Shown piece after piece: positions 52,107 through 64,000 of a stretch of 64,000 bases of DNA. The notes beneath the pieces are model-generated. The model made no database searches and was not told where the DNA came from. It worked only from the letters and a program-made list of their open reading frames with translations. Location of the stretch: sequence record OP380604.1; one strand, given 5' to 3'. How positions within the stretch are numbered: position 1 is the first letter of the stretch; each line of letters begins with the position of its first letter. Both the position numbers and the translations under genes were made by a program.

Positions 52107-52615
52107 AAGCCATATGGAGCATAAGACCCCAGTTTCAAAACGCTGGCAACTCGTTTGGCGCGATTTGGAGTTTGTCTAGCCCATGCACTATCAAGTGCGT
52201 TTCTATAAGCGCCGTCCCAGTCTTTCGCTTTCAAACAACGAAGCATTCCCGGGAACTTCGATACGCCAACAGCTCCCATTTGAAATACCATGTTTTCGAT
52301 TGCAGTCTGACGCACCGTATCAAGACTAACATAAACGTCAGCCAAAGTCGGTAGGCTCATGATACCGCGCTTTAAAACGGATAGATCGCGCTCGAACAAA
52401 GCAAGCACTTCCGCGCCGGTGATCTTACCGTCTTTAACTACTCTTCCAATATGGGAACTCAATTCGCGATTGATTTCTCCCATATCTTTTGTTCTTTTCT
52501 TTAGAATAAGGTGTCCGATTCCAATTGTTGGGTAACCTTCTGTATCCCAATATACAGTCTCTTTATATCCCTCATCCTGTTTTAACATCTGTGCAAGCAT
52601 TTTAGCCTCCGTCAA
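52103..52615 (-). CDS. e: T4-type lysozyme (GH24 endolysin)
   Basis: DEG...Y.DTEGYPTIGIGHLI catalytic E/D/T; NMVFQMG; S.WARQTPNRAKRV. Confidence 0.93.
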   Translation of the reverse strand: MTEAKMLAQMLKQDEGYKETVYWDTEGYPTIGIGHLILKKRTKDMGEINRELSSHIGRVVKDGKITGAEVLALFERDLSVLKRGIMSLPTLADVYVSLDTVRQTAIENMVFQMGAVGVSKFPGMLRCLKAKDWDGAYRNALDSAWARQTPNRAKRVASVLKLGSYAPYGF

Positions 52616-53126
52616 TAGGATTCAGTGTAAATACAAACTTTTTACGCTCTTGCCATGTTCCTGCCGTTGCAATGCCAATAATCTTCCAACCGAATCTGAA
52701 ATAAAACTGTTGTCCGAATATACTCGGCTTTCTCACAAAGAATTGAAAATGACCGTCGGGTTGGGTAATGAAATACCACCCGAATCCGTGCTCTTTCCCG
52801 TTTGTATAACCCAATGAGCCCTTCCAATCGAAATCTTTAGATTTAGGCTGATAAGCTAAAACGGACCAAGCAAATCCATATGCAGGGTTTCTAATAAGCC
52901 ATAGCACTCTCTGAACATATCTAGGATATCCAGTACAACGTTCCACATGGCCGCTATCACCGTCTAATGGAGCATCTGGTGTTTGATACCAGCTCAACCA
53001 GTTAGGCAGTGTTTCTTTATTTAGTGCGAATAACGGAAGAACCGGTGATAAGATCCAGCACGTTAGGCACATAAACAAATGAATAGGAAGCAAAGTCCAG
53101 AATTGAAACATTCTTAAAGCTAACAT
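52602..53126 (-). CDS. Conserved phage membrane-associated protein upstream of the endolysin
   Basis: Hydrophobic N-terminus, LP.WLSWYQTPD.PLDGD...WLIRNPAYGF family. Confidence 0.6.
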   Translation of the reverse strand: MLALRMFQFWTLLPIHLFMCLTCWILSPVLPLFALNKETLPNWLSWYQTPDAPLDGDSGHVERCTGYPRYVQRVLWLIRNPAYGFAWSVLAYQPKSKDFDWKGSLGYTNGKEHGFGWYFITQPDGHFQFFVRKPSIFGQQFYFRFGWKIIGIATAGTWQERKKFVFTLNPIDGG

Positions 53127-53145
53127 ATTATCTCCTTTAAAAGAA

Positions 53146-53165
53146 AAGGGAGCCGAAGCTCCCTT
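53146..53165 (-). terminator. Terminator after fibre gene
   Basis: AAGGGAGC-TTCG-GCTCCCTT followed by a T-run on the minus strand. Confidence 0.8.
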
Positions 53166-53170
53166 ATTAT

Positions 53171-56100
53171 TTAGTTAACAGTTTGTAGGTTGTAACCAAT
53201 TACAAATCTCATGCGAGAGTTTTCTTTGTATGTTACGAATGTTTGGTTGTCTCCAGCAAAACGTCCGTACCACTCAATTCCACCCGCGCCACCAGAAATA
53301 TCATAGTTTACACCAATTGCTTGCATATACTCTAGGTCATAACGTGTAAATGTTTTTGATGTAAAACATTCATTATTATCCCAAGCGGCAACGAACAAGA
53401 TCATATCAAAGTTTGTCCATGGCTGATTCAAAGCAAAGTTACCTGCGTTTAAATCTCCTGACCACAATGTAACTGCACCTCTCGCTCTAATATTCAAGTG
53501 ATTATGACCACCGGCAGGAGGTGGGTTACTTGCAGAATAAACCCTGTTACCGGAATCATATACGCCAGCAGGAGCTTTAAAGTTGCCGCTAATATCAAAA
53601 TAATAGATCGCTTGTGTATTAGCTGTTCCAGCTTCCGCAGATCCAACACGAATAACACCTTGTCCCCAAGTGTTACCTTGACGAAGTACACCTAGATCAA
53701 CATCAGTTGTATATCCAGCTCCGGTTGCATATCCTCTACTACGAACAAGTGGATAATAATCACTCGCTCCTGGAATTGCTCCGTAATCTACATGAAACGG
53801 AGCAATCGTTGTATATTGCGCTGCATATGCATGTCCATATGCATTAGACCACGTAGCTCCATTAAGTTTAATAGTTGAAGTATTAATGGTCGCAATTCGA
53901 GCCGCTTCGCCAAACGCACCGTTAGAAGTGCCGATATTCAAATCGCCTGTAGTATGATCCACCCACATAATACGACCGTGTTTTCCGGGAACATGGAATT
54001 CAAGAACAGGATTACCGCCGGTTCGTATCTGGAACTGCCCGCTATTGACGTAAGTTTTTGGATTCAAATCGATATTATTTGCACCAAATCCAGCAATAGC
54101 CCTTGACATATCTGGAGTCTGTCCGTGTGAAATAACAATACCAGAATCCGGAGCTATCTTGCTGATATGATACCAAGCTTTGCTATTATCATTTCTAAAC
54201 ATAGCACTAGCACCGGCGTCAAATATAGCGGCACCGGATTGTCCGGCTTTAAGCGACATTTGGTTATTTGTGTTGATTTGAATTCCTTGGTCAACTGCCC
54301 ATGGAGATCCACCCATTCCCAAATATACCGATTCTGGCTTATCTCCACCACCGTAGAATCCAACTCCACCTGCAATAACCGAAGGGTCTGTGCCAGTGAC
54401 CAATGCCAAACCACGAGCCCAACCACCAACAAATCCACTAGGTCTAACGTAATATTGCGACAATCCATTTCTACTGTTTATCTCGAATCCATGAACAGCA
54501 GTAACAGTTTTGTTGTTATTGAACTCAAGAGCGCGATAAGCATAATCAACACTAATATATGGCAACTTATCCGTGCCCGCGCTGATTTCCATTGCCAGTT
54601 GCCGTCCGTTACTATCAACACCCACTGTATTACCAACAAACCATTTACCGATAACTTTGCCGTCTGCTTGGAAACTGGTAATATTACTCATATTTCCAAT
54701 GCCTCCCGGACGTATTTGAACCGAAGCTTGATCTGTTGTATTGGTACCACCGCCGATAATAGTTCTACCGTCTGCACCAACAAACATACCCTGACTAGCA
54801 TTTCTCGCAGAAACAAATCCAGCGTCGTCGTTTGATGTAAACTGTTTAGCGTTTACTGTTCCAAGTGCAGATACTCCGCCAAGTTGATTCAAACTAAAGA
54901 TTGATGTTTCGCCGTTGTTGCCATGGTTTATTCTCAATAAGTTACCGTCAACGAACATATGATAACGGGTACCAGCGCCATCTTGCATACTGATAGAGCC
55001 TTTGTTGTTTACCTGAATAGCATTTTTGATACTAGCAGCAACAAGAGTTCCGTTCATTGTATCCCCTGCTTTAGCAACGTTCTTTGCGTCGATTGCATCG
55101 GCATAGTCTTTACGAACAAGGGCATTTGGCAAATTAACTTGCGGTGTTGTTGATACCGGTTTACGAATTTCAGTATTTCCGTTTTCGTTCGCTCTTAACA
55201 CCATGTCCGGTTCGGTAATACCAGTTGTATTTTCGTGAATTCGGAATGTTTTACCGTCAGCGGCAAAACTCCAACGCTTATCTCCGTTATCAGTTTCAAC
55301 GAAATGAATCTGGGGTGCGTTGTTTTTAATAGTCAACGACCCTGTCATTTCGTCTCCGGCGCGACTTACGAGATTCAGATCGTCATTAGTTGGCTTATTG
55401 CCAGAACTATAGATCTTTTCTCTTGTGACGATATCGGTAACAGTTAATCCTGTTGCGTCGCTAATCAGAATAGGATCTTCGCCGTAAACATATCCGTCAA
55501 TATAAACATAGTTCGAGCTTGCTGTTCCTCTATACAATGCAATATATTCAACACCGTCTGTATGAGTGTGATAAACAAGTTTTGAATTTGCATAGGAACT
55601 AGCGTAATGAATCTCAACGTCCTGTTGTGTATAAGCACTAACTGCCGAAATATCGATATAGTTGGCTTGTAGATTAGAAACGGTTGAACCTCGTTCAAAT
55701 GTAATACGGCCAACGAATCCACGTTTTGACAATGCCTTATCTTTATATCTGGGAGCAAACAGAATTAACATAGGCTTAGCGTCTGCCTGATATCCAAGAC
55801 GCTCCATAGTACGTTTAGCGGCCCCGTCTCCGGTATCTAACGATTTTCTCCAAGGACCCCATTCCATTTTACCGTCATTACGAGTTCTTGTGTAAGATGT
55901 TCCGTTTACTTTGTTTGTTGCAATCTGAGTTACAAAAGTATTTCCGTCTTTATCTGCACCAGTAACAATCATTGTGCCGTAATCAAAGGGAGGAGGATTA
56001 ACGGACCCAGTAGCCCTTGCTAGATATAAGTTATAAAAGCCAGAACTCTCATATTCGTCAAAGTTAATAGGACCCCTCAGCATTTTAGACTTGCCTTCAA

Positions 56101-57247
56101 GACCAACTCGATCTTTAATACTAGCCCATGGAATAAATCCGTCGGTATCAACAAGAACTCTACCGTTACCAGCATTCCACTTCATTGCTTGATGTAGAAC
56201 AACGTTTTTGGTAGTATATACTTCCGATGTAGTATTATAACCCAAATACAAATCACCACTAGCGGCACTTAATGTAACGTTGCCGTTATTGTGATCTCTA
56301 AAAATCGAATACTCTTTGCTGTTATAGAGAGAGTTAATACCGCCAACGCCTTCCAGTTTGATAATACCGTTGTTCTTCATGTTGCCACCGCTTCGACTCA
56401 ATGCGTCGGCTGGTAAATCATCAAGCTTAACTTTATCGCTCGTACTCATTGAACCCGCTGCGGTACGAGTGGCAGCCGTGATTGCCAGCGTTGGAGTCAC
56501 ACCACCTGTAGTAGTAAGTGGGGCAGTTGTCGCAATGCTTTGGACAGCGGTACCAACTTTGGTATCGACGTATTTCTTGTTCGCTGCGTGTGTGTCGGCA
56601 GTCGGTTGATCTTGAATGACAGGCAAATCGGTGAAAGTCTTAGTTCCAGCGATATTCTGATTTCCAGTGATCTTTACGTTTTGCGCGTCTAGTGTATTGA
56701 TTCTGGTATTAGCAGTAGCCAAATCCGCAGTCAATTTATCAGTCGTTGTTTCCGCAAATTGCATTGCGCGATCAACTTCTTTGTCCACGTAATCTTTACG
56801 AGTTGCGTGTGCAGCGGAAGATGGTGTTGTTGCTTGAATACTAACTTGACCTCCACCGAAATCGGTATAGTTTGCCAAGTTGTTTGTGTAAATTCGGAAG
56901 TTACCGGCGTCGTTAGTTAGAACTTGAATACCAGCGCGAGCACTTCCGTTTTTACGACGACTTGCAAGCAGCCAGTGTGCGCCAGATGTATTATCAATCT
57001 GTTGTTGGAAAGCTGCGTTTGCGCTCCCGCCTTGCCATGCAGTATCAACACCAGCGGCGATAACTTGTGCCGTCGTATCTACTATTCCTTTTAATGACAT
57101 CGCGCCATTAATAGTTTGACCGCCTTTCGAGCTAATCAAATCGAACTCTTTATAAAATAGGCTATCATCAAGAGGGTTTAGCTCAAGAATGCCTTGGTGC
57201 CAGATTAGATTTCCGCCAATCTGAGATCCTAATTTCAGATCTGCCAT
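53171..57247 (-). CDS. 37: Distal long tail fibre B (gp36-like N-terminus fused to gp37-like body, self-contained tip)
   Basis: MADLKLGSQIGGNLIWHQG resembles the T4 gp36 start; TRKDYVD motifs, pyocin-knob-like block, gp37-type APF...YYPLV segment; no C-terminal chaperone. Confidence 0.8.
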   Translation of the reverse strand: MADLKLGSQIGGNLIWHQGILELNPLDDSLFYKEFDLISSKGGQTINGAMSLKGIVDTTAQVIAAGVDTAWQGGSANAAFQQQIDNTSGAHWLLASRRKNGSARAGIQVLTNDAGNFRIYTNNLANYTDFGGGQVSIQATTPSSAAHATRKDYVDKEVDRAMQFAETTTDKLTADLATANTRINTLDAQNVKITGNQNIAGTKTFTDLPVIQDQPTADTHAANKKYVDTKVGTAVQSIATTAPLTTTGGVTPTLAITAATRTAAGSMSTSDKVKLDDLPADALSRSGGNMKNNGIIKLEGVGGINSLYNSKEYSIFRDHNNGNVTLSAASGDLYLGYNTTSEVYTTKNVVLHQAMKWNAGNGRVLVDTDGFIPWASIKDRVGLEGKSKMLRGPINFDEYESSGFYNLYLARATGSVNPPPFDYGTMIVTGADKDGNTFVTQIATNKVNGTSYTRTRNDGKMEWGPWRKSLDTGDGAAKRTMERLGYQADAKPMLILFAPRYKDKALSKRGFVGRITFERGSTVSNLQANYIDISAVSAYTQQDVEIHYASSYANSKLVYHTHTDGVEYIALYRGTASSNYVYIDGYVYGEDPILISDATGLTVTDIVTREKIYSSGNKPTNDDLNLVSRAGDEMTGSLTIKNNAPQIHFVETDNGDKRWSFAADGKTFRIHENTTGITEPDMVLRANENGNTEIRKPVSTTPQVNLPNALVRKDYADAIDAKNVAKAGDTMNGTLVAASIKNAIQVNNKGSISMQDGAGTRYHMFVDGNLLRINHGNNGETSIFSLNQLGGVSALGTVNAKQFTSNDDAGFVSARNASQGMFVGADGRTIIGGGTNTTDQASVQIRPGGIGNMSNITSFQADGKVIGKWFVGNTVGVDSNGRQLAMEISAGTDKLPYISVDYAYRALEFNNNKTVTAVHGFEINSRNGLSQYYVRPSGFVGGWARGLALVTGTDPSVIAGGVGFYGGGDKPESVYLGMGGSPWAVDQGIQINTNNQMSLKAGQSGAAIFDAGASAMFRNDNSKAWYHISKIAPDSGIVISHGQTPDMSRAIAGFGANNIDLNPKTYVNSGQFQIRTGGNPVLEFHVPGKHGRIMWVDHTTGDLNIGTSNGAFGEAARIATINTSTIKLNGATWSNAYGHAYAAQYTTIAPFHVDYGAIPGASDYYPLVRSRGYATGAGYTTDVDLGVLRQGNTWGQGVIRVGSAEAGTANTQAIYYFDISGNFKAPAGVYDSGNRVYSASNPPPAGGHNHLNIRARGAVTLWSGDLNAGNFALNQPWTNFDMILFVAAWDNNECFTSKTFTRYDLEYMQAIGVNYDISGGAGGIEWYGRFAGDNQTFVTYKENSRMRFVIGYNLQTVN

Positions 57248-57273
57248 TATAGACTCCTCTCAGTTTATAGCTG

Positions 57274-57309
57274 TATTTAGCAAAAAGAAAAGGGAGCCGA
57301 AGCTCCCTT
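57274..57309 (-). promoter_or_regulatory. Terminator plus late promoter for fibre B
   Basis: CUUCGG hairpin, then GCTAAATA (57281-57274) and an SD on the minus strand. Confidence 0.7.
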
Positions 57310-57310
57310 A

Positions 57311-57763
57311 TTATCCAGTAAAAGTCCAATCGTATCGTTTTTGCGGTGAAAATGGCGCGTTACCAAAAGTAACAGTTGCACTACCACCAGAACTCCACGC
57401 TTTTCTAATCGTAACGCCAGCTAAACTCATTCGTTGCCACGTATTCGCTGCAATACCATCGAGCGCAATAGCACCAGATGTCGTAATGTAAATCCATGGG
57501 TCACCTGATATAATAGCATATTGAGCAGTAGAACCGTATGGTCCACCGTGCTTGATAATAGTATTCGTGCCATCAAACCAGAAATTAACTGGGATAAAAT
57601 TAAAAAGTCTAGGAGCTTCAATTAGATTCAGATATCGTTTATCAACAAGTTCGCTAATCATACCAGCAGCCGGCAATCCAGCTTGAGTTCTCATATTTGA
57701 ACCCCATCCGTTTGCTCTGAACTCCGCATTCGCGGTACTCATCATGAAAGGTAATGCTACCAT
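57311..57763 (-). CDS. Putative gp38-type adhesin or fibre tip protein (short)
   Basis: Directly downstream of the chaperone-bearing fibre; N-terminus weakly like the T2-type gp38 attachment domain. Confidence 0.45.
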   Translation of the reverse strand: MVALPFMMSTANAEFRANGWGSNMRTQAGLPAAGMISELVDKRYLNLIEAPRLFNFIPVNFWFDGTNTIIKHGGPYGSTAQYAIISGDPWIYITTSGAIALDGIAANTWQRMSLAGVTIRKAWSSGGSATVTFGNAPFSPQKRYDWTFTG

Positions 57764-57793
57764 AATAATAACGGGGATTTCTCCCCGTCCTCC

Positions 57794-60700
57794 TTATTTA
57801 AGTTTAGATTTAAGTTCTTCAATTTCGGCTTTAAGTTCTTTGATTGCTTCTACCAACAGCGCGTTAACGCCAGAGTTAGAAACTGTCAAGAATTCTTCGC
57901 CAGCGGTATTTTTAAAGCTACCAACTGCTTCCGGTAATACTTTTTGCAGATGTTGAGCGATAATACCAGCTTCACGCTTATCACAGCCAAACTTGTCAAA
58001 TGTTTGTCCACTCAGAGTGCAAACTTTATCAACTGCATTCAAAATCGGTTGGAAATTAGATTTCAATCGAATATCAGAACGAATCTGAACATCGTTGAAA
58101 CTACCGTTTCGACTGAATTGAACATCACCGTTTTCCAAGTTCAACGTCATTGGATGAATGCCGTTAGGACCCGAGTCAAATGTACCGTTGTTTGCGCTAG
58201 GGGACCTCAACACATAGAACAAGTTACTGTTGCAGTGTAAGAATGCTCCCATGTGATCTGTATCTTGCAATACGATAGTTGGAGCGCCGTTGTTGATGTT
58301 CATGTTCCCAGTTATGTTCAACGCACCGAGAGCGGTTAGACCTTTATTCAAATAGAAAGAAGGTCTGTCGGTGTAAATGTGAGCATAGCTAGTATTCTGA
58401 GCACCAATATCAATAGAACCGTTTGTGCTAACGATCTGCAATTGCTTAGAACCACCAACTTGTAAGCGAACATGGAAATCTTCATCTGCTATTTGAGTAT
58501 GGTGGAAATCAATGTATTGTCCAATCTCCATCACACCGTTAGGGCCGACGAATGGGATCTTATTAAGGATGCCATCTTTCGTTCCGGCTTGACCATAGTT
58601 GACTTCATGAGCATTCATTTGTCGTCTCCAACCCGGAGAATAAGCAGAACCATGATTCACGTAGATAAACTGTCCACTGGCGTTATTCTGTGAATTTGGT
58701 GTCAAACTAGAGCCTGTTGTTGTTGGCGTAGTAATACGAATCATGTATTGAGCTTTACCAATTACTTCAACAATACACCCAGCCAAGTGAATGTTACCGT
58801 ATCCAGTATCAGTCAAAACGTTATTACCAGCATAATCCCACGTGGCTTTACCGCACCAATAAACAGTCTTGAATGCTCCCATTGTAGTTAGCATTTCAAT
58901 CATACGAGCTGTGGTAATACCAGTTTCACCAGAAGTTTTACCTGTAGCTTTGTCTGCAAACACGATCTCTTGTCCAGTAACGCTTACGTTATTATACGCA
59001 ACTACGTTACCACCGGCATTAATAGTCTTTGCGACGCTCAAATCGCCAGCCGGCATAGTTATAGCTCTGTCGTTTTCGAATCGAATCGCTTGATAAGTAC
59101 CATCAACGCTAATGTATGGAATCTTATTTGTAGCATCAACTTCCATAGCCAAAATGCGATCATTCTTTTGAACTGCGAGATAACTATCACCAATAACAGC
59201 GCCGGTAACAAGCGATCTATCCGGACTTAATTGCATCAGATACTTGTCGTTCAACTTAACACCAAATCCAGCCGATCCGGTTGAACTACCTCTAACATGA
59301 CCAAATATCATATTATCTTTGTACCACTGTGAGAATACACCACCGATAATGCGAGTTACACCAGTATTGCCTGTGTATTCTGCGGCATCGTTGGTCAAAG
59401 TAAGTTCGTTTGATTCTCTAGCAGCAAGAACAACATCATGCATAAATGTCGTGTTCGCTTTCTTGATGTTTATTAAATCAACAGCCGCTTTGCCACTCGC
59501 TTGAGTTCTAAACTTGAAATACTCATTATCATCGTCACCAACGGTAAAGTGCATGTAACTATCGACATCACCATTTGAATCGTTTTTAAATCCAATTCTA
59601 GCGTAATCTGTATTACGTGACCATTGAAGAATACTGTCATTTGAGAATGTCAAGTTACCAGTCATACTATCGCCAGTCTTATTGACAGCAGCAGCAGGCA
59701 ATCCGTCCAGTTTAGCCTTATCGGCAGCGGACATTGCACCGTCGGCAGAGTTTGTTGCGTTTGTCAGACTAATAACTGGGTTAATTCCACCTGTACTCTT
59801 AACTGCACCTGTAGCCGTAACGCTCTGTACCGCTGTGCCAACTTTGGTGTCTACATAATCCTTACGAGTTAATGCGTTTGCGCTATCGCTCTGTGGCAAG
59901 TTGGTATAAACGCCAGTGCTGCTAACCCAGAATGGAGTCAGGTAAGCACCTCCTGCGTTTTTAACACCACTTAACAACTCAAGTCTATCAGTTGCGATAT
60001 CACCGGTTGTGGATTGACGAATGAAGAATCTGTTATCTCCGTTACGAGCGAACGTAATATAATTCGGACCGTCGTCAGTAGAGTTCAGGGTCAACATACT
60101 ATCGTATGTGCTTTCAATGACAATATTAGCCGTTGATTTCAACGTACCGCTAATTGTATCGCCCTTTTTATTCACAAACTGAACAGAAGATGCCTCGCCG
60201 TATATCTCTTTCCATTCGCTCCACGTGCTTGTTCCTCTACCGCGAATGTATTTCAGACCGGTGAAAGTTGTATATTCTTGTTGAATACCGTATGCGGAAC
60301 GAGAAACGACCAATGAGCCAGCAACGCCAACGGGATAATGTAATGCCGCCGTTGCATTTGCATTGGTATCTTGGTAATAAAAGCCGATCCCAGTGACTGT
60401 ATCCAAGTCAACCGACAATTTAGTTCTAATGTCCGGCATAGATTGTGTATCGTCGGCAGTTGGCTTATTCCATTCTCCGTAAGTTTCTTTGTTATTGAAT
60501 AGAAGCTTACCGTCAAAAGCCCATAACATATCATAATCTGCTTGTGTTGCGGATGATGAATTCTTACCGGTTTTTGGCCAAGCAATACCTTCGCTAGTTG
60601 TATCCGACGGATCGTTGAATACTAACTGATTGATTCCGCCGATAGACCCGTTATTCAATTGAATGCTGTATTTTCCGTAACCCATTGAATCCGGAACTTT

Positions 60701-61858
60701 CATATTCAATAGACCGGTCATTTCATCGCCGTCGCGTGATACCAGATTCAACTCAACGTTTGTTGGCTTATCATTCTCATGATAAATTCTTGAGCTAGGA
60801 GCCCAATCGGTTCTACCATGCTTAAACCAAAGACGTTTATCATCGGTGTCAGATCTTGAACTAGAAAAAATAGACCAAGATGCGTAAGTTGTATCCCAGC
60901 CTTTAACAGTGAAACCAGAAACCCAGTTTGTTGAAACGTCGCTCTTGTTTGTGAAATAAGCCGAAATTGTGCGAGCATCCAGCGCACTTGGCTGAATCAT
61001 TGCCGCTCTTTCGTCTTTAACTCTGATCCAGTGTTTGGCGTCAACCTCTGCTTTCGTATAAGCGTTTAGATCGCCAGGAGTTGGCTTGTTGACAGGACTA
61101 TATACTTCTTTGTCTGTATCAACAAACAAACGCCCTACAGTTGTCATTTTGCCGTTTCTGAGATCGAACCAAATACTGTTCTCTCCGTCGGCAACAACTT
61201 TACTTGTCGCTGTTGTTACGGTAGGACTAAAACCAACACCATACCAAGATTTGATTTGAATATTTGTTTTATCTTTTGCTGCCGCGTCGCCTGTTCCGCC
61301 GAAAACGCCAGTATTATTCGCAACTGAACCACCAGGAAATTTAACTCGGATACCTTGATTGTCATTATGAAAATCAAGGTTACCAGTCATACCGTCACCG
61401 GTTTTATTGACTTTCTTCGCATCTTCTGCCACAACATAATCCCTACGGGTAAAGCTATTAGCTGCACCAGATTGTGGGCTGTTCGTCAATACCGGATATT
61501 GAAACGTTGCGCTATCACCGTTATTCAGAATAAACTGTGGAGCACTGTCAGTTACACCAGTTGAAATTGTATATAGACGATCATTAATAGTTTCGTGCCA
61601 AATTGTAGACGCCGCACCGGAGCGCATTTTACGCAAATAACGCTTAACGCCACCGGGACCGTCACTCATACTCTCGATATCGTATACATCATTCGGTGTA
61701 CCAAACTTGATTGAGCCAAGCATCGTTTGATACCCTTTTGTAGTCATTATTTCCTGATCGCGATAAAATAGTTTATCGTCAACGGGATTTAATTCCAGGA
61801 TTCCTTGGTGCCAGATTAGATTTCCACCAATCTGAGACCCCAATTTAAGATCTGCCAT
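57794..61858 (-). CDS. 37: Distal long tail fibre A (gp36-gp37 fusion) with C-terminal peptidase S74 intramolecular chaperone
   Basis: gp36-like MADLK...WHQG and GGTGD...IKSWYGVGF; C-terminal SDIRLK...GIIAQ...VLPEAV...ALLVEAIKEL. Confidence 0.85.
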   Translation of the reverse strand: MADLKLGSQIGGNLIWHQGILELNPVDDKLFYRDQEIMTTKGYQTMLGSIKFGTPNDVYDIESMSDGPGGVKRYLRKMRSGAASTIWHETINDRLYTISTGVTDSAPQFILNNGDSATFQYPVLTNSPQSGAANSFTRRDYVVAEDAKKVNKTGDGMTGNLDFHNDNQGIRVKFPGGSVANNTGVFGGTGDAAAKDKTNIQIKSWYGVGFSPTVTTATSKVVADGENSIWFDLRNGKMTTVGRLFVDTDKEVYSPVNKPTPGDLNAYTKAEVDAKHWIRVKDERAAMIQPSALDARTISAYFTNKSDVSTNWVSGFTVKGWDTTYASWSIFSSSRSDTDDKRLWFKHGRTDWAPSSRIYHENDKPTNVELNLVSRDGDEMTGLLNMKVPDSMGYGKYSIQLNNGSIGGINQLVFNDPSDTTSEGIAWPKTGKNSSSATQADYDMLWAFDGKLLFNNKETYGEWNKPTADDTQSMPDIRTKLSVDLDTVTGIGFYYQDTNANATAALHYPVGVAGSLVVSRSAYGIQQEYTTFTGLKYIRGRGTSTWSEWKEIYGEASSVQFVNKKGDTISGTLKSTANIVIESTYDSMLTLNSTDDGPNYITFARNGDNRFFIRQSTTGDIATDRLELLSGVKNAGGAYLTPFWVSSTGVYTNLPQSDSANALTRKDYVDTKVGTAVQSVTATGAVKSTGGINPVISLTNATNSADGAMSAADKAKLDGLPAAAVNKTGDSMTGNLTFSNDSILQWSRNTDYARIGFKNDSNGDVDSYMHFTVGDDDNEYFKFRTQASGKAAVDLINIKKANTTFMHDVVLAARESNELTLTNDAAEYTGNTGVTRIIGGVFSQWYKDNMIFGHVRGSSTGSAGFGVKLNDKYLMQLSPDRSLVTGAVIGDSYLAVQKNDRILAMEVDATNKIPYISVDGTYQAIRFENDRAITMPAGDLSVAKTINAGGNVVAYNNVSVTGQEIVFADKATGKTSGETGITTARMIEMLTTMGAFKTVYWCGKATWDYAGNNVLTDTGYGNIHLAGCIVEVIGKAQYMIRITTPTTTGSSLTPNSQNNASGQFIYVNHGSAYSPGWRRQMNAHEVNYGQAGTKDGILNKIPFVGPNGVMEIGQYIDFHHTQIADEDFHVRLQVGGSKQLQIVSTNGSIDIGAQNTSYAHIYTDRPSFYLNKGLTALGALNITGNMNINNGAPTIVLQDTDHMGAFLHCNSNLFYVLRSPSANNGTFDSGPNGIHPMTLNLENGDVQFSRNGSFNDVQIRSDIRLKSNFQPILNAVDKVCTLSGQTFDKFGCDKREAGIIAQHLQKVLPEAVGSFKNTAGEEFLTVSNSGVNALLVEAIKELKAEIEELKSKLK

Positions 61859-61883
61859 TTCTAATCCTCATGTTATTTTCATT

Positions 61884-61928
61884 TATTTAGCGATTTTGAA
61901 ATAAAAAAGCCCTGACCGAAGTCAGGGC
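61884..61928 (-). promoter_or_regulatory. Terminator plus late promoter for fibre A
   Basis: GCCCTGAC-TTCG-GTCAGGGC and a T-run, then GCTAAATA (61891-61884). Confidence 0.7.
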
Positions 61929-61967
61929 AAACCCGCAAGTAGCGGTAAGGGTACCGGGTAGGTACGA

Positions 61968-64000
61968 TTAGATTGAGACCCAAGGTTTTGCATCCAGAAT
62001 ACTAACTCTTGCTCCGGATCCTTTCGGTCTAAAAACAACTTTCTTGGTTGAGTTCAACTCGCTAAACCAAGTTTTAACAGTTTCGTTTTCCGGAATTCCA
62101 TATCCAAACGCATCAACTGATTGATTTGCGTTGAATGTTCCGATTAACTGTTCGTTATTATTGTTGTCGATCTGGTACAACTCAACATCAACGGAATTAA
62201 ATGGTCTTTTATTTCCTACAAATCTCAAGTAGGCAGTATACCCACTCTTATTTATAGTAGTGAAAAGATCCATTTGATGCCCGTCAATAAACCATGAGTC
62301 TTTCATTCTTCCTATTTGGAATTCTTCTCCTTTGGTTCCGTCCCATCCAAATATTCCTTCTTTCGCGTCAATCTCTGCGATTCTCACGTATTTAATTGCA
62401 CCGAGTTCGTTTTCAATAACGGTGAAAGTAGGCTGCACGGTTGAATAATAAGAGAGATCGTAACGTCTGCTATTGCAGAGTTTTGTGCTACTGTCGATAA
62501 GTTCAACGAGATAAATGTCGTTGTTATATCTTAATCCAGTTTCTCTTGCTCCGATAAGTTTGACGTATTCTGTTCCGTCCGGATTCCACGCTCCACTAAC
62601 AGATTTCCCGTTCACATTTAACGTGACGTTATTCCCTGTTACTTTAACAAAGATGTCCAAAACGTCTCCCACTTTAGCTCCGGTTTTCAGCGTTACCCCG
62701 GTATTCAATACTTTTTTGGAGTTATAAGAGAATACACGTATATCGCCAACGCTACCAAACTGATCAATGTTGATTGTACTTGTATCGTACTTATCGCCGC
62801 TGATAATAGGATTAACAGAATCTCGCAATTCACCGACTTTACATTTTACCCTAATAGCCCAGTCTTTTGGATCTGGTTTCCATGCGTTTTCTACTAACAG
62901 ATACCCTTTGTTCGTTGCATTGAACTGCGGTACCCATTGTAGTCTTGCATTTGTTTTCATGACAGGAGATTCTCTTTCGTCCAGCTTATATTCTTTGCCT
63001 TCGGTATTACTAATGATTGCGTGGGTGTATACCTCGCTCACATTAAGTCTACTAACAAAAACAGTCTCATTCGCTTTAGGACTAATTGTGCGAATGTAGA
63101 TTCCGTGATTATCTGTGGTCACGTTATAGCACAACGATCCCCTATTACGACCAGCCGGAAGACGTTTTATAACCGGAGCGTTACCGTCATGGGTATTAGA
63201 GTATCTTAGTTCATATTCCGTTTCTCCGGAAATATCAAAATCGATCCTCAACATCATTCCTTTCTTTGCGTCTATTTTAAGAACTGATCCACTCGGAGTT
63301 GTAGCGGTATTGAACTTATAAGACTTTGTATTCTGCTTCACAGCGGTAGTAAAGAAAGAAAAGTCATTTAGATTCACATTGGAATAAATTGTTCTGGACT
63401 TTCCTAATTCGTCTCTGATATAGTTGTTATATGCATCATAACGACTCACGTTATAATTTTTGTAATAACGATCATCGGCAGATCCGTCAAATGAGAGATC
63501 CCAGATATAGCCTTTGAAATACTCAATATTGTTATATCGAGCGCCAATTCGGTTTACTTGGTTTCCTTCTCTGATATAACCACAAATCAGATAGTCTGTG
63601 TTAGGAACAACTTTCATTCCGTTGGTATACGGCATGCCGTTAATAGTAGATACAACAATAGACCCGCCTACGTTAATAGAGTCCGCGCTATTAATATAGA
63701 TATAGCCGTATTTGTTATCTGTTTCGGTAGACGTTCTTCCTTCTAACACGTATTGGGCTTGTCCGGTTTTCTCATAGTTGAACTTAACTTGAAACTCTCC
63801 CGGGCCTTTCCACATGGGAATATCCGCGCATTGATTGACTCCATTGAATCCAGCGATTTGCTTGTTAATATCGATCCAGTCAACGTTGGTAACGGTTCCG
63901 TTTATTTTTGGCGATGTAACACATTCTATTCTGACTTTCATAGTCTTTGCGTTTTTACCAGCTTCTTCAACAATCCAAGCTCCCGACGTTGGAGACAGTG
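61968..64000 (-). CDS. Large virion protein with LamG/ConA-like domains, probable extended gp35 hinge (5' partial)
   Basis: The frame stays open from 63941 to the window end; it sits in the gene 35 position upstream of the gp36-like fibre; beta-sandwich pattern. Confidence 0.55.
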   Translation of the reverse strand, partial: LSPTSGAWIVEEAGKNAKTMKVRIECVTSPKINGTVTNVDWIDINKQIAGFNGVNQCADIPMWKGPGEFQVKFNYEKTGQAQYVLEGRTSTETDNKYGYIYINSADSINVGGSIVVSTINGMPYTNGMKVVPNTDYLICGYIREGNQVNRIGARYNNIEYFKGYIWDLSFDGSADDRYYKNYNVSRYDAYNNYIRDELGKSRTIYSNVNLNDFSFFTTAVKQNTKSYKFNTATTPSGSVLKIDAKKGMMLRIDFDISGETEYELRYSNTHDGNAPVIKRLPAGRNRGSLCYNVTTDNHGIYIRTISPKANETVFVSRLNVSEVYTHAIISNTEGKEYKLDERESPVMKTNARLQWVPQFNATNKGYLLVENAWKPDPKDWAIRVKCKVGELRDSVNPIISGDKYDTSTINIDQFGSVGDIRVFSYNSKKVLNTGVTLKTGAKVGDVLDIFVKVTGNNVTLNVNGKSVSGAWNPDGTEYVKLIGARETGLRYNNDIYLVELIDSSTKLCNSRRYDLSYYSTVQPTFTVIENELGAIKYVRIAEIDAKEGIFGWDGTKGEEFQIGRMKDSWFIDGHQMDLFTTINKSGYTAYLRFVGNKRPFNSVDVELYQIDNNNNEQLIGTFNANQSVDAFGYGIPENETVKTWFSELNSTKKVVFRPKGSGARVSILDAKPWVSI

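Follow-up and report, generated by a model that had tools for sequence, protein, structure and literature searches.

The window analysed here covers 64,000 nt of sequence record OP380604.1, which belongs to Aeromonas phage avDM12-TAAL (Straboviridae, Chrysonvirus; T4-like, Aeh1-type) with a genome of 231 kb. It contains two long tail fibre genes, referred to as A and B in the following, next to the gene for the hinge protein gp35, and the region is organised as follows:

61968..64000, minus strand: enlarged gp35 kneecap/hinge protein, of which the C-terminal 657 aa lie in the window (phrog_11229)
57794..61858, minus strand: fibre A, a gp36-gp37 fusion distal half-fibre of 1354 aa (phrog_19567 over its full length)
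57311..57763, minus strand: accessory gene of 150 aa, co-transcribed with fibre A (phrog_11523)
53171..57247, minus strand: fibre B, a gp36-gp37 fusion distal half-fibre of 1358 aa (phrog_26758)
52602..53126, minus strand: DUF7338 gene, just before the lysozyme gene e (Pfam DUF7338, E 6e-46)

The original prediction of two genes of about 1355 aa with a common start was borne out by the open reading frames of 1354 and 1358 aa, both of which begin with MADLKLGSQIGGNLIWHQGILELNP. Either chain corresponds approximately to T4 gp36 plus gp37, which are encoded by genes of 666 and 3081 nt, and this near-equal length fits a parallel rather than a serial use of the two proteins. Their proposed nature as gp36-gp37 fusions was verified by BLASTP, since residues 1 to approximately 170 of A and of B align with T4 gp36 1–186/188, starting from residue 1 (E 7e-12 for A; E 4e-13 to gp36 1–188 for B). 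In addition, fibre A matches phrog_1425 at residues 1–41 and the Pfam family Phage_T4_gp36 (PF03903) at residues 154–249 with 33.1 bits against a cut-off of 26, while fibre B gave no Pfam match, Phage_T4_gp36 and Peptidase_S74 included. A separate gene 36 is absent.

The similarity between the two fibres is concentrated at their very start, where both carry a peptide of the MADLK...GG..IWHQG type:

61784..61858, minus strand: predicted docking N-terminus of fibre A, 25 aa, same as in B
57173..57247, minus strand: predicted docking N-terminus of fibre B, 25 aa, same as in A

A search of the 231-kb genome detected this N-terminus in only these two genes and no third copy. On the protein level, 35 of the first 52 residues are identical between A and B (BLASTP, E 9e-20), and beyond residue 52 only scattered shaft motifs are common to both. 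In T4, the N-terminus of gp36 binds to the gp35 kneecap, and by analogy the shared peptide of A and B would be the counterpart of the end joining gp35 and may serve for docking. Of 1346 phage records with this peptide, 1326 contain it a single time per genome and only about 20 contain two copies; the other two-copy phages identified were the Cronobacter phages S13 and LPCS28. These data also bear on the alternative that one of the two proteins attaches outside the knee and forms an additional set of fibres, e.g., at the baseplate or collar. We regard this as very unlikely because both N-termini are of the gp36 type, which in the records with a single copy is that of the hinge connector, and because both genes are located inside the gp34-gp35 module.

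The identity of 52 of 56 nt at the 5' ends of A and B was reproduced, with a longest exact run of 23 nt, and extending the comparison to the first 75 nt yields 11 differences, four of which fall within the first 56. A comparison of 14 genes from seven phages revealed up to 21 nucleotide differences within the first 75 nt and at most two amino-acid changes. That the peptide is near-invariant while the DNA differs to this extent points to selection on the predicted docking peptide rather than to gene conversion. Gene conversion as the source of the common 5' ends was rejected because the distance between A and B in these 75 nt is not lower within a genome (13.7) than between genomes (12.5; seven phages). 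The further proposal that recombination between the repeats deletes fibre A and thereby acts as a host range switch turned out to be weak, since no relative lacks A and the DNA repeat is not maintained in other members. The expected 4.6-kb deletion joint was absent from the contigs of four metagenome runs, which contain the same order of A, small ORF and B, but they derive from diverged relatives and represent a weak test.

Each fibre gene was supposed to have its own terminator and late promoter, and we confirmed these signals and their presence in seven relatives:

61909..61928, minus strand: intrinsic terminator after gp34-gp35, with an 8-bp stem, UUCG loop and U tail
61884..61891, minus strand: late-promoter motif GCTAAATA of fibre A, 25 nt 5' of the ATG
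57290..57309, minus strand: terminator of the fibre A unit, after the small ORF, with an 8-bp stem, UUCG loop and U tail
57274..57281, minus strand: late-promoter motif GCTAAATA of fibre B, 26 nt 5' of the ATG
53146..53165, minus strand: terminator of the fibre B unit, with an 8-bp stem, UUCG loop and U tail

The terminator upstream of fibre A shows a folding energy of −23.4 kcal/mol (z −3.9) and is kept in the seven relatives. CTAAATA is the consensus of the late promoters of phage Aeh1 (PMC1524935). The motif precedes fibre B in all seven relatives, and genome-wide 15 of its 36 copies are located 10–45 nt before a long ORF, compared to 5% for permuted motifs. We therefore predict that A and B have late promoters of the Aeh1 type, with CTAAATA located about 20–30 nt before the start codon. 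Good Shine-Dalgarno sequences are present at both fibre genes.

The small gene following fibre A had been described as gp38-like. This holds for its position directly after a distal fibre gene and for its ribosome-binding site, which is split by a hairpin:

57770..57789, minus strand: hairpin that splits the ribosome-binding site of the small ORF, between its Shine-Dalgarno sequence AAGGAGG and its ATG

The hairpin has a folding energy of −16.6 kcal/mol (z −2.9) and is almost invariant in seven relatives, and gene 38 of T4 shows the same split design (PMC3014915). Neither the sequence nor the fold of the product agrees with gp38. We obtained no hit to Pfam GP38 or Gp38_N in eight family members at E values up to 10, an hhalign probability of only 3.5% against gp38 of S13, and no blastp match to T4 gp38. 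The structural model consists of a disordered N-terminus and a generic Ig-like sandwich (pLDDT about 90) instead of the polyglycine sandwich of S16 gp38, and fold searches with this model gave a best Z score of 4.7, no Foldseek match with E ≤0.001 and no gp38 entry. A relationship to gp38 was thus ruled out by Pfam, hhalign and fold searches, and a weak Atlas lead to Gp38_N (0.77) was not upheld. The small protein combines a conserved N-terminus of about 40 aa with a variable C-terminal part. Co-variation with the tip of fibre A was likewise rejected, as both types of the small ORF are found with both types of tips. On the other side of the fibre module, the DUF7338 gene codes for a protein with a single N-terminal membrane segment (hydrophobic residues 7–37), which is 82–97% identical across the relatives irrespective of the tip of fibre B. 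It is unlikely to act as a chaperone for B, considering that it is still 82% identical in phage PX29, where fibre B carries a different tip with an assembly gene of its own. The DUF7338 gene adjoins the fibre module but is probably not part of it.

The two fibres end in different domains, as had been proposed:

57797..58078, minus strand: predicted C-terminal intramolecular chaperone (S74) of fibre A, matching Peptidase_S74
53174..53500, minus strand: predicted C-terminal globular tip domain of fibre B, residues approximately 1250–1358, from an AF2 model and structure comparison

Fibre A matches Peptidase_S74 (PF13884) at residues 1261–1312 (E 2.6e-10; 40.9 bits against a cut-off of 22). The match contains the motif S-D-I-R-L-K, which places Ser1261 and Lys1266 five residues apart and is invariant in seven orthologues. 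A Ser-Lys dyad with this spacing is known from endosialidase, and the domain of fibre A is predicted to be a self-cleaving chaperone. Other segments of fibre A resemble the phage Mu fibre S/S' and the C-terminus of S16 gp37. Fibre B shows no S74 match, and the fold predicted for its tip resembles those of phage receptor-binding tips. The AF2 monomer model reached pLDDT values of 75–95 for the last approximately 105 residues only, and VIA-align retrieved the phi812 baseplate protein (Z 10.4), phage K gp144 (Z 10.2) and the T7 gp17 tip (Z 9.3; rmsd 3.0 over 88 aligned residues), followed by unrelated entries with Z ≤5.9. Foldseek gave a probability of 1.00, and the model suggests a C-terminal β-sandwich tip fold of the T7 gp17 type, with a receptor-binding domain of this kind at the end of fibre B. 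Residues 698–1226 of fibre B share 42% identity with a chromosomal tail-fibre protein of Aeromonas jandaei.

These differences in the predicted C-terminal folding domains (S74 in A, a T7-like tip in B) also argue against the formation of mixed A/B heterotrimers, as does the restriction of common sequence beyond residue 52 to scattered shaft motifs, even though a random mixture of subunits has been mentioned by Trojet et al. (PMC3157838). An end-to-end arrangement of A with B is similarly contradicted by the full distal-half length of each chain alone and by the N-terminus of B, which copies the gp35-facing end of A and offers no partner for the A tip. We consider serial assembly or heterotrimers to be highly improbable.

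Both fibres are kept in all ten Aeh1-like isolates (14 records) and in three metagenome contigs, and the two genes represent old paralogues that form separate lineages. In six of the seven relatives aligned in full, both genes are intact, the exception being fibre B in the record of phage Ah1, which as deposited shows an 11-nt frameshifting deletion. Because the same record also contains a 1-nt indel in gp35, an error might account for the frameshift in B. Should the frameshift be real, B would be dispensable on that host, and Ah1 may represent a natural knockout. The disrupted gene would agree with a situation in which only one fibre is functional per infection and the other is a spare, is limited by host or conditions in folding or assembly, or is never incorporated. 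Such "a single expressed version" has been raised by Trojet et al. (PMC3157838), and the predicted dependence of A on its own chaperone, perhaps also on the small ORF, would be consistent with it. Nevertheless, we judge this explanation unlikely in view of the same promoter motif with the same spacing and the good Shine-Dalgarno sequences at both genes, and of the intact state of both in the other six relatives. The conservation also counts against the mixed use of A and B favoured below: if a phage could manage with either fibre by itself, one of them should have been lost in some cases, but none of the 13 relatives lacks one of the genes.

The gp35 gene extends beyond the window to position 65924 and codes for a protein of 1318 aa, which is 3.5 times as long as that of T4 and belongs to a family annotated as "long tail fiber protein proximal connector" (phrog_11229). 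Only residues 5–317 match the T4-type family phrog_1154, leaving about 1000 aa beyond the T4-like part; given this size and limited similarity, the knee may work differently from that of T4. [quoted passage not shown] An enlarged gp35 could hold an A trimer and a B trimer at once, so that each of the six fibres forks. If true, there would be twelve distal rods per virion and both specificities on each fibre, an arrangement which to our knowledge is not known in the T4 family. Retention of both fibre genes without exception would fit this arrangement, as would the gp35 of S13, the other dual-fibre lineage, whose gene is also longer than that of T4 (1506 vs. 1119 nt). Moreover, branched fibres have been proposed for the T5-like phages DT57C and DT571/2 (PMC4728585). 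Against this stand the lack of an internal gp35 repeat in a blastp self-comparison, which would have provided two like docking sites, the fibre size in virions, which fits a single gp37 trimer according to Trojet et al. (PMC3157838), and the identical docking peptides, which more simply suggest one kind of site. Forked fibres thus appear rather unlikely to us.

Duplication of g37 as such is already known: Trojet et al. described it in 2011 as a tandem arrangement in the relative Aeh1 and in RB43 and raised the question of a mixture versus a single version (PMC3157838). Aeh1 (Aeh1p335, Aeh1p337) shows the same order of gp34, a giant gp35, fibre A, small ORF, fibre B, small ORF and lysozyme. Its fibre A is 72% identical over the full length and its fibre B 64% over residues 1–676 and 52% over 720–1244; the N-termini are the same, whereas the tips and the small ORF are of other sequence types, and its own 5' ends show 12 differences in 75 nt vs. 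11 in avDM12-TAAL. Phage S13 also contains two tandem gp36-gp37 fusions, which have the first 19 aa in common and are separated by a terminator and a late promoter, in this case TATAAATA. In contrast to avDM12-TAAL, its chains are only 851 and 763 aa long and both end in S74, its gp35 measures 501 aa, and downstream of the second fusion lies a true glycine-rich gp38 adhesin of the T2 type. S13 and LPCS28 belong to the RB43 kind, annotated as "gp36-37.2" in that phage. In Aeromonas phage 65, lysozyme e and asiA follow a 1286-aa gp36-gp37 fusion, which has an N-terminus of the gp36 type but is present as a single copy not adjoining gp34/gp35. T4 itself shares a homologous gp34 (33% identity over 984 aa), gp35 residues 5–317, the gp36 N-terminus, late transcription and a gene with a split ribosome-binding site after the fibre, but its genes 36 and 37 are separate and single-copy, and its gp37 has a needle tip and requires the gp38 chaperone. 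No homologue of gp38 or holin t was detectable in avDM12-TAAL. The tailspike pairs of K1-5/SP6 and LtfA/LtfB of DT57C are also encoded side by side as two receptor-binding proteins with an expected wider host range. In these phages, adaptors or distinct attachment sites place both proteins on every virion, whereas fibres A and B have one docking peptide in common.

Literature searches yielded no virion proteomics, microscopy or genetics of fibre A or B, and we base our model on the assembly of T4. Each chain would combine a gp36-like proximal part with a long gp37-like shaft and form its own homotrimer, fibre A being matured by S74 self-cleavage and made together with the small accessory protein, and fibre B bringing the T7-gp17-like receptor-binding end. 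Because A and B carry the same N-terminal peptide, either trimer should be mountable on the gp34-gp35 proximal half, with both competing for one site. As each gene would be expressed late from a CTAAATA promoter of its own, the virions released in a burst would be expected to bear both A and B among their six long fibres. We consider the chance somewhat better than even that the phage builds two complete distal half-fibres, A and B, which can replace each other on one kind of gp35 knee and are mixed on the virions, and they probably provide the virions with two receptor specificities. Two tips on one docking peptide would be a simple genome-encoded route to phenotypically mixed virions with two host specificities, which is relevant for predicting host ranges and for swapping fibres in Aeromonas phages used in aquaculture. 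For the latter, the conserved 25-aa adaptor would offer a natural splice point at which whole distal fibres may be exchanged.

By megablast, positions 52500-62000 of the window were 100% identical, at the same coordinates, to Aeromonas phage avDM12-TAAL (OP380604.1; Straboviridae, Chrysonvirus; host A. hydrophila). The region represents the long-tail-fibre module on the minus strand, including two fibre genes, here called A and B, and a small ORF following fibre A:

65935-69645, minus strand, gp34, outside the window
61968-65924, minus strand, enlarged gp35 (1318 aa; its last 657 aa lie inside the window, 61968-64000)
57794-61858, minus strand, fibre A (1354 aa)
57770-57789, minus strand, hairpin-split ribosome-binding site of the small ORF (Shine-Dalgarno AAGGAGG, 18-nt hairpin, 7 nt, ATG)
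57311-57763, minus strand, small ORF (150 aa)
53171-57247, minus strand, fibre B (1358 aa)
52602-53126, minus strand, DUF7338 gene
last of the module, after the DUF7338 gene, minus strand, lysozyme e

The original prediction of two gp36-gp37 fusions with the same N-terminus was confirmed by translation, BLASTP and DNA comparison. The first 25 residues of A and B are identical, as are 35 of 52 residues over the N-terminus (BLASTP E 9e-20), and the 5' ends of the genes agree at 52 of 56 nt, with a longest exact run of 23 nt. Using T4 proteins from NC_000866, residues 1 to about 186 of the 221 of gp36 aligned with fibre A (E 7e-12) and fibre B (E 4e-13), and no meaningful similarity to gp37 was found in either. 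When the rebuilt 231-kb genome was searched in six frames, the docking N-terminus, the counterpart of the gp35-facing end of T4 gp36, turned up only in A and B, and no separate g36 was seen. Because each chain is also about as long as T4 gp36 and gp37 combined, each fibre amounts to a whole distal half-fibre. The best genome-wide match to T4 gp36 lies in the C-terminal part of gp34 (66061-66300, outside the window; 47.5% over 80 aa versus gp36 residues 118-195, E 9e-15), not the distal fibres.

The same layout is present in phages Aeh1, Ah1, PX29, phiAS5, AsFcp_4 and phiWae14, and all 14 fibre genes encode the same starting peptide, including that of PX29 fibre B once its start, annotated 36 codons too late, is corrected. 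The A and B genes fall into two lineages of orthologues whose shafts and tips are mosaic, and no loss of either gene was seen among the relatives examined. In a tblastn search, the 52-aa N-terminus had matches in 1346 phage records, only about 20 of which contain two copies, namely those of ten Aeh1-like phages (14 records) and of Cronobacter phages S13 and LPCS28. The order of fibre A with its S74 domain, small ORF and fibre B also recurs in three metagenome contigs found via the small ORF. The first 75 nt of the fibre genes show up to 21 differences with at most two amino acid changes, and the mean A-B distance within genomes (13.7) is no smaller than that between genomes (12.5). This indicates purifying selection on the encoded peptide rather than ongoing gene conversion of the 5' ends. 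The 52/56 nt identity is a local trait of avDM12-TAAL, undercutting the proposal that a direct repeat is maintained as a recombination substrate. In a weak test of the deletion, no joint between the repeats was found in contigs of diverged relatives from four metagenome runs.

As predicted, each fibre gene has its own putative promoter and terminator. The motif GCTAAATA lies 25 and 26 nt upstream of the two start codons, and 8-bp hairpins with a UUCG loop and U tail lie downstream of gp35, of the small ORF and of fibre B. CTAAATA is the late-promoter consensus of Aeh1 (Nolan et al. 2006, PMC1524935); 15 of its 36 copies in the avDM12-TAAL genome lie 10-45 nt upstream of an ATG that opens an ORF of 100 aa or longer (5% for 30 permuted motifs), serving, among others, gp34, gp9, wac, gp15, gp19 and gp23. 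Seven relatives retain the hairpin together with (C/A)TAAATA upstream of fibre A and with CTAAATA upstream of fibre B. From this conserved arrangement, we predict three transcription units, gp34-gp35, A plus small ORF, and B.

Another CTAAATA is located between the fibre B stop codon and its terminator hairpin (53146-53174, minus strand), just before the DUF7338 and lysozyme genes, and is kept in six of the seven relatives (e.g., L002, L003 and L005-L007) despite differing B coding ends. Its transcript would start at or inside the hairpin, so that one hairpin may both terminate the fibre B mRNA and serve as the 5' end of the lysis transcript. The DUF7338 protein (174 aa, with a single N-terminal hydrophobic segment) is encoded where T4 has holin t, flanked by the fibre genes and the asiA side, and lysozyme e follows immediately. 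tblastn detected no holin t homologue in the avDM12-TAAL genome, and we infer a candidate holin-like protein.

The two fibres end differently. Fibre A contains Pfam domains Phage_T4_gp36 (154-249) and Peptidase_S74 (1261-1312), both above curated cut-offs, which bears out the predicted terminal chaperone. Its Ser...Lys motif (S1261-D-I-R-L-K1266) is invariant in seven orthologues, and cleavage probably removes the chaperone once the fibre has folded. The A shaft is in part similar to phage Mu fibre S/S', and the C-terminus is similar to that of S16 gp37. The end of the chaperone includes 41 nt (57803-57843) that match 'L-shaped tail fiber' genes in many T4-like Klebsiella phages at 95% identity; this looks like a small module common to phages of distant hosts. 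Over residues 698-1226, fibre B shares 42% identity with a tail-fibre protein encoded in the Aeromonas jandaei chromosome. That protein continues into an S74 domain, whereas fibre B continues into about 125 further residues; the B tip arose by replacement of the S74 domain. The predicted model of its last ~105 residues (pLDDT 75-95) matches the fold of receptor-binding tip domains, with Z scores of 10.4 for a phi812 baseplate protein, 10.2 for phage K gp144, 9.3 for T7 gp17 and 7.6 for a monocin side fibre (next rows at most 5.9), so that the earlier term 'self-contained tip' fits.

The small ORF had been called gp38-like, which holds for its position and translation signal but neither for sequence nor for fold. 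As in T4 gene 38 (PMC3014915), a hairpin between the Shine-Dalgarno sequence and start codon shortens the spacing, here from 25 to 7 nt, and this split site is nearly invariant in seven relatives. The phages that carry it here reportedly lack the gene 25 version of the arrangement. Comparisons with Pfam, hhalign, BLAST, Foldseek and VIA-align related the small ORF to neither gp38 type. About 40 N-terminal residues are strongly conserved in the family and the C-terminal part is variable; the model shows a disordered N-terminus followed by an Ig-like sandwich (pLDDT ~90). There are two small-ORF types and two A-tip types, with no co-variation between them. We read the small ORF as a candidate accessory of fibre A that may act as adaptor, adhesin or assembly factor.

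In T4, a gp35 monomer connects the rods formed by gp34 and by gp36-gp37 (PMC3157838; 2026 preprint 10.64898/2026.03.06.709160). With two full-length distal rods carrying the same gp36-type end and both predicted to be made late, the simplest outcome would be that each gp35 knee takes either an A or a B rod, making A/B-mixed virions a plausible mechanism. The matching chain lengths, the constant retention of both genes and the parallel layout of Cronobacter phage S13, whose two fusions (851 and 763 aa) have a common N-terminus and are separated by a terminator plus TATAAATA, fit this one-rod-per-knee reading. The avDM12-TAAL gp35 is T4-like at residues 5-317 only and continues for about 1000 more, and the enlarged protein might instead hold both rods at once in a forked knee; yet BLASTP found no internal repeat in it, and we consider this improbable. 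Among relatives, gp35 residues 1-200 are 85-97% conserved, but residues 201-300, matching the T4 whisker-binding CBM-like domain in position, only 40-44% in Aeh1 and phiAS5; another enlarged protein is fibritin (wac), with 1035 aa. In the Ah1 record, an 11-nt frameshifting deletion in otherwise identical sequence splits fibre B into ORFs of 792 and 582 aa (L013, 16784-20849). If real, fibre B would be dispensable on the host of Ah1, but we give this little weight because the Ah1 gp35 carries a 1-nt indel leaving it 83 aa shorter, and an A5/A6 homopolymer difference, called an error, splits the gp35 of PX29 (L016, 8024-11984).

Trojet et al. 2011 (PMC3157838) already stated that Aeh1 and RB43 'have duplications of g37' of unclear function, with either a random mixture in the fibre or a single expressed version being possible, and in the GenBank notes of Aeh1 both proteins are described as resembling gp37 and gp36. 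The two-fibre finding is therefore a correct re-discovery of a real and conserved feature. Beyond the prior description, the analysis indicates selection on the docking peptide and a conserved arrangement of promoters and terminators, finds two copies to be rare, rejects the small ORF as a gp38 homologue, and gives the B tip a predicted fold and an origin by S74 replacement.
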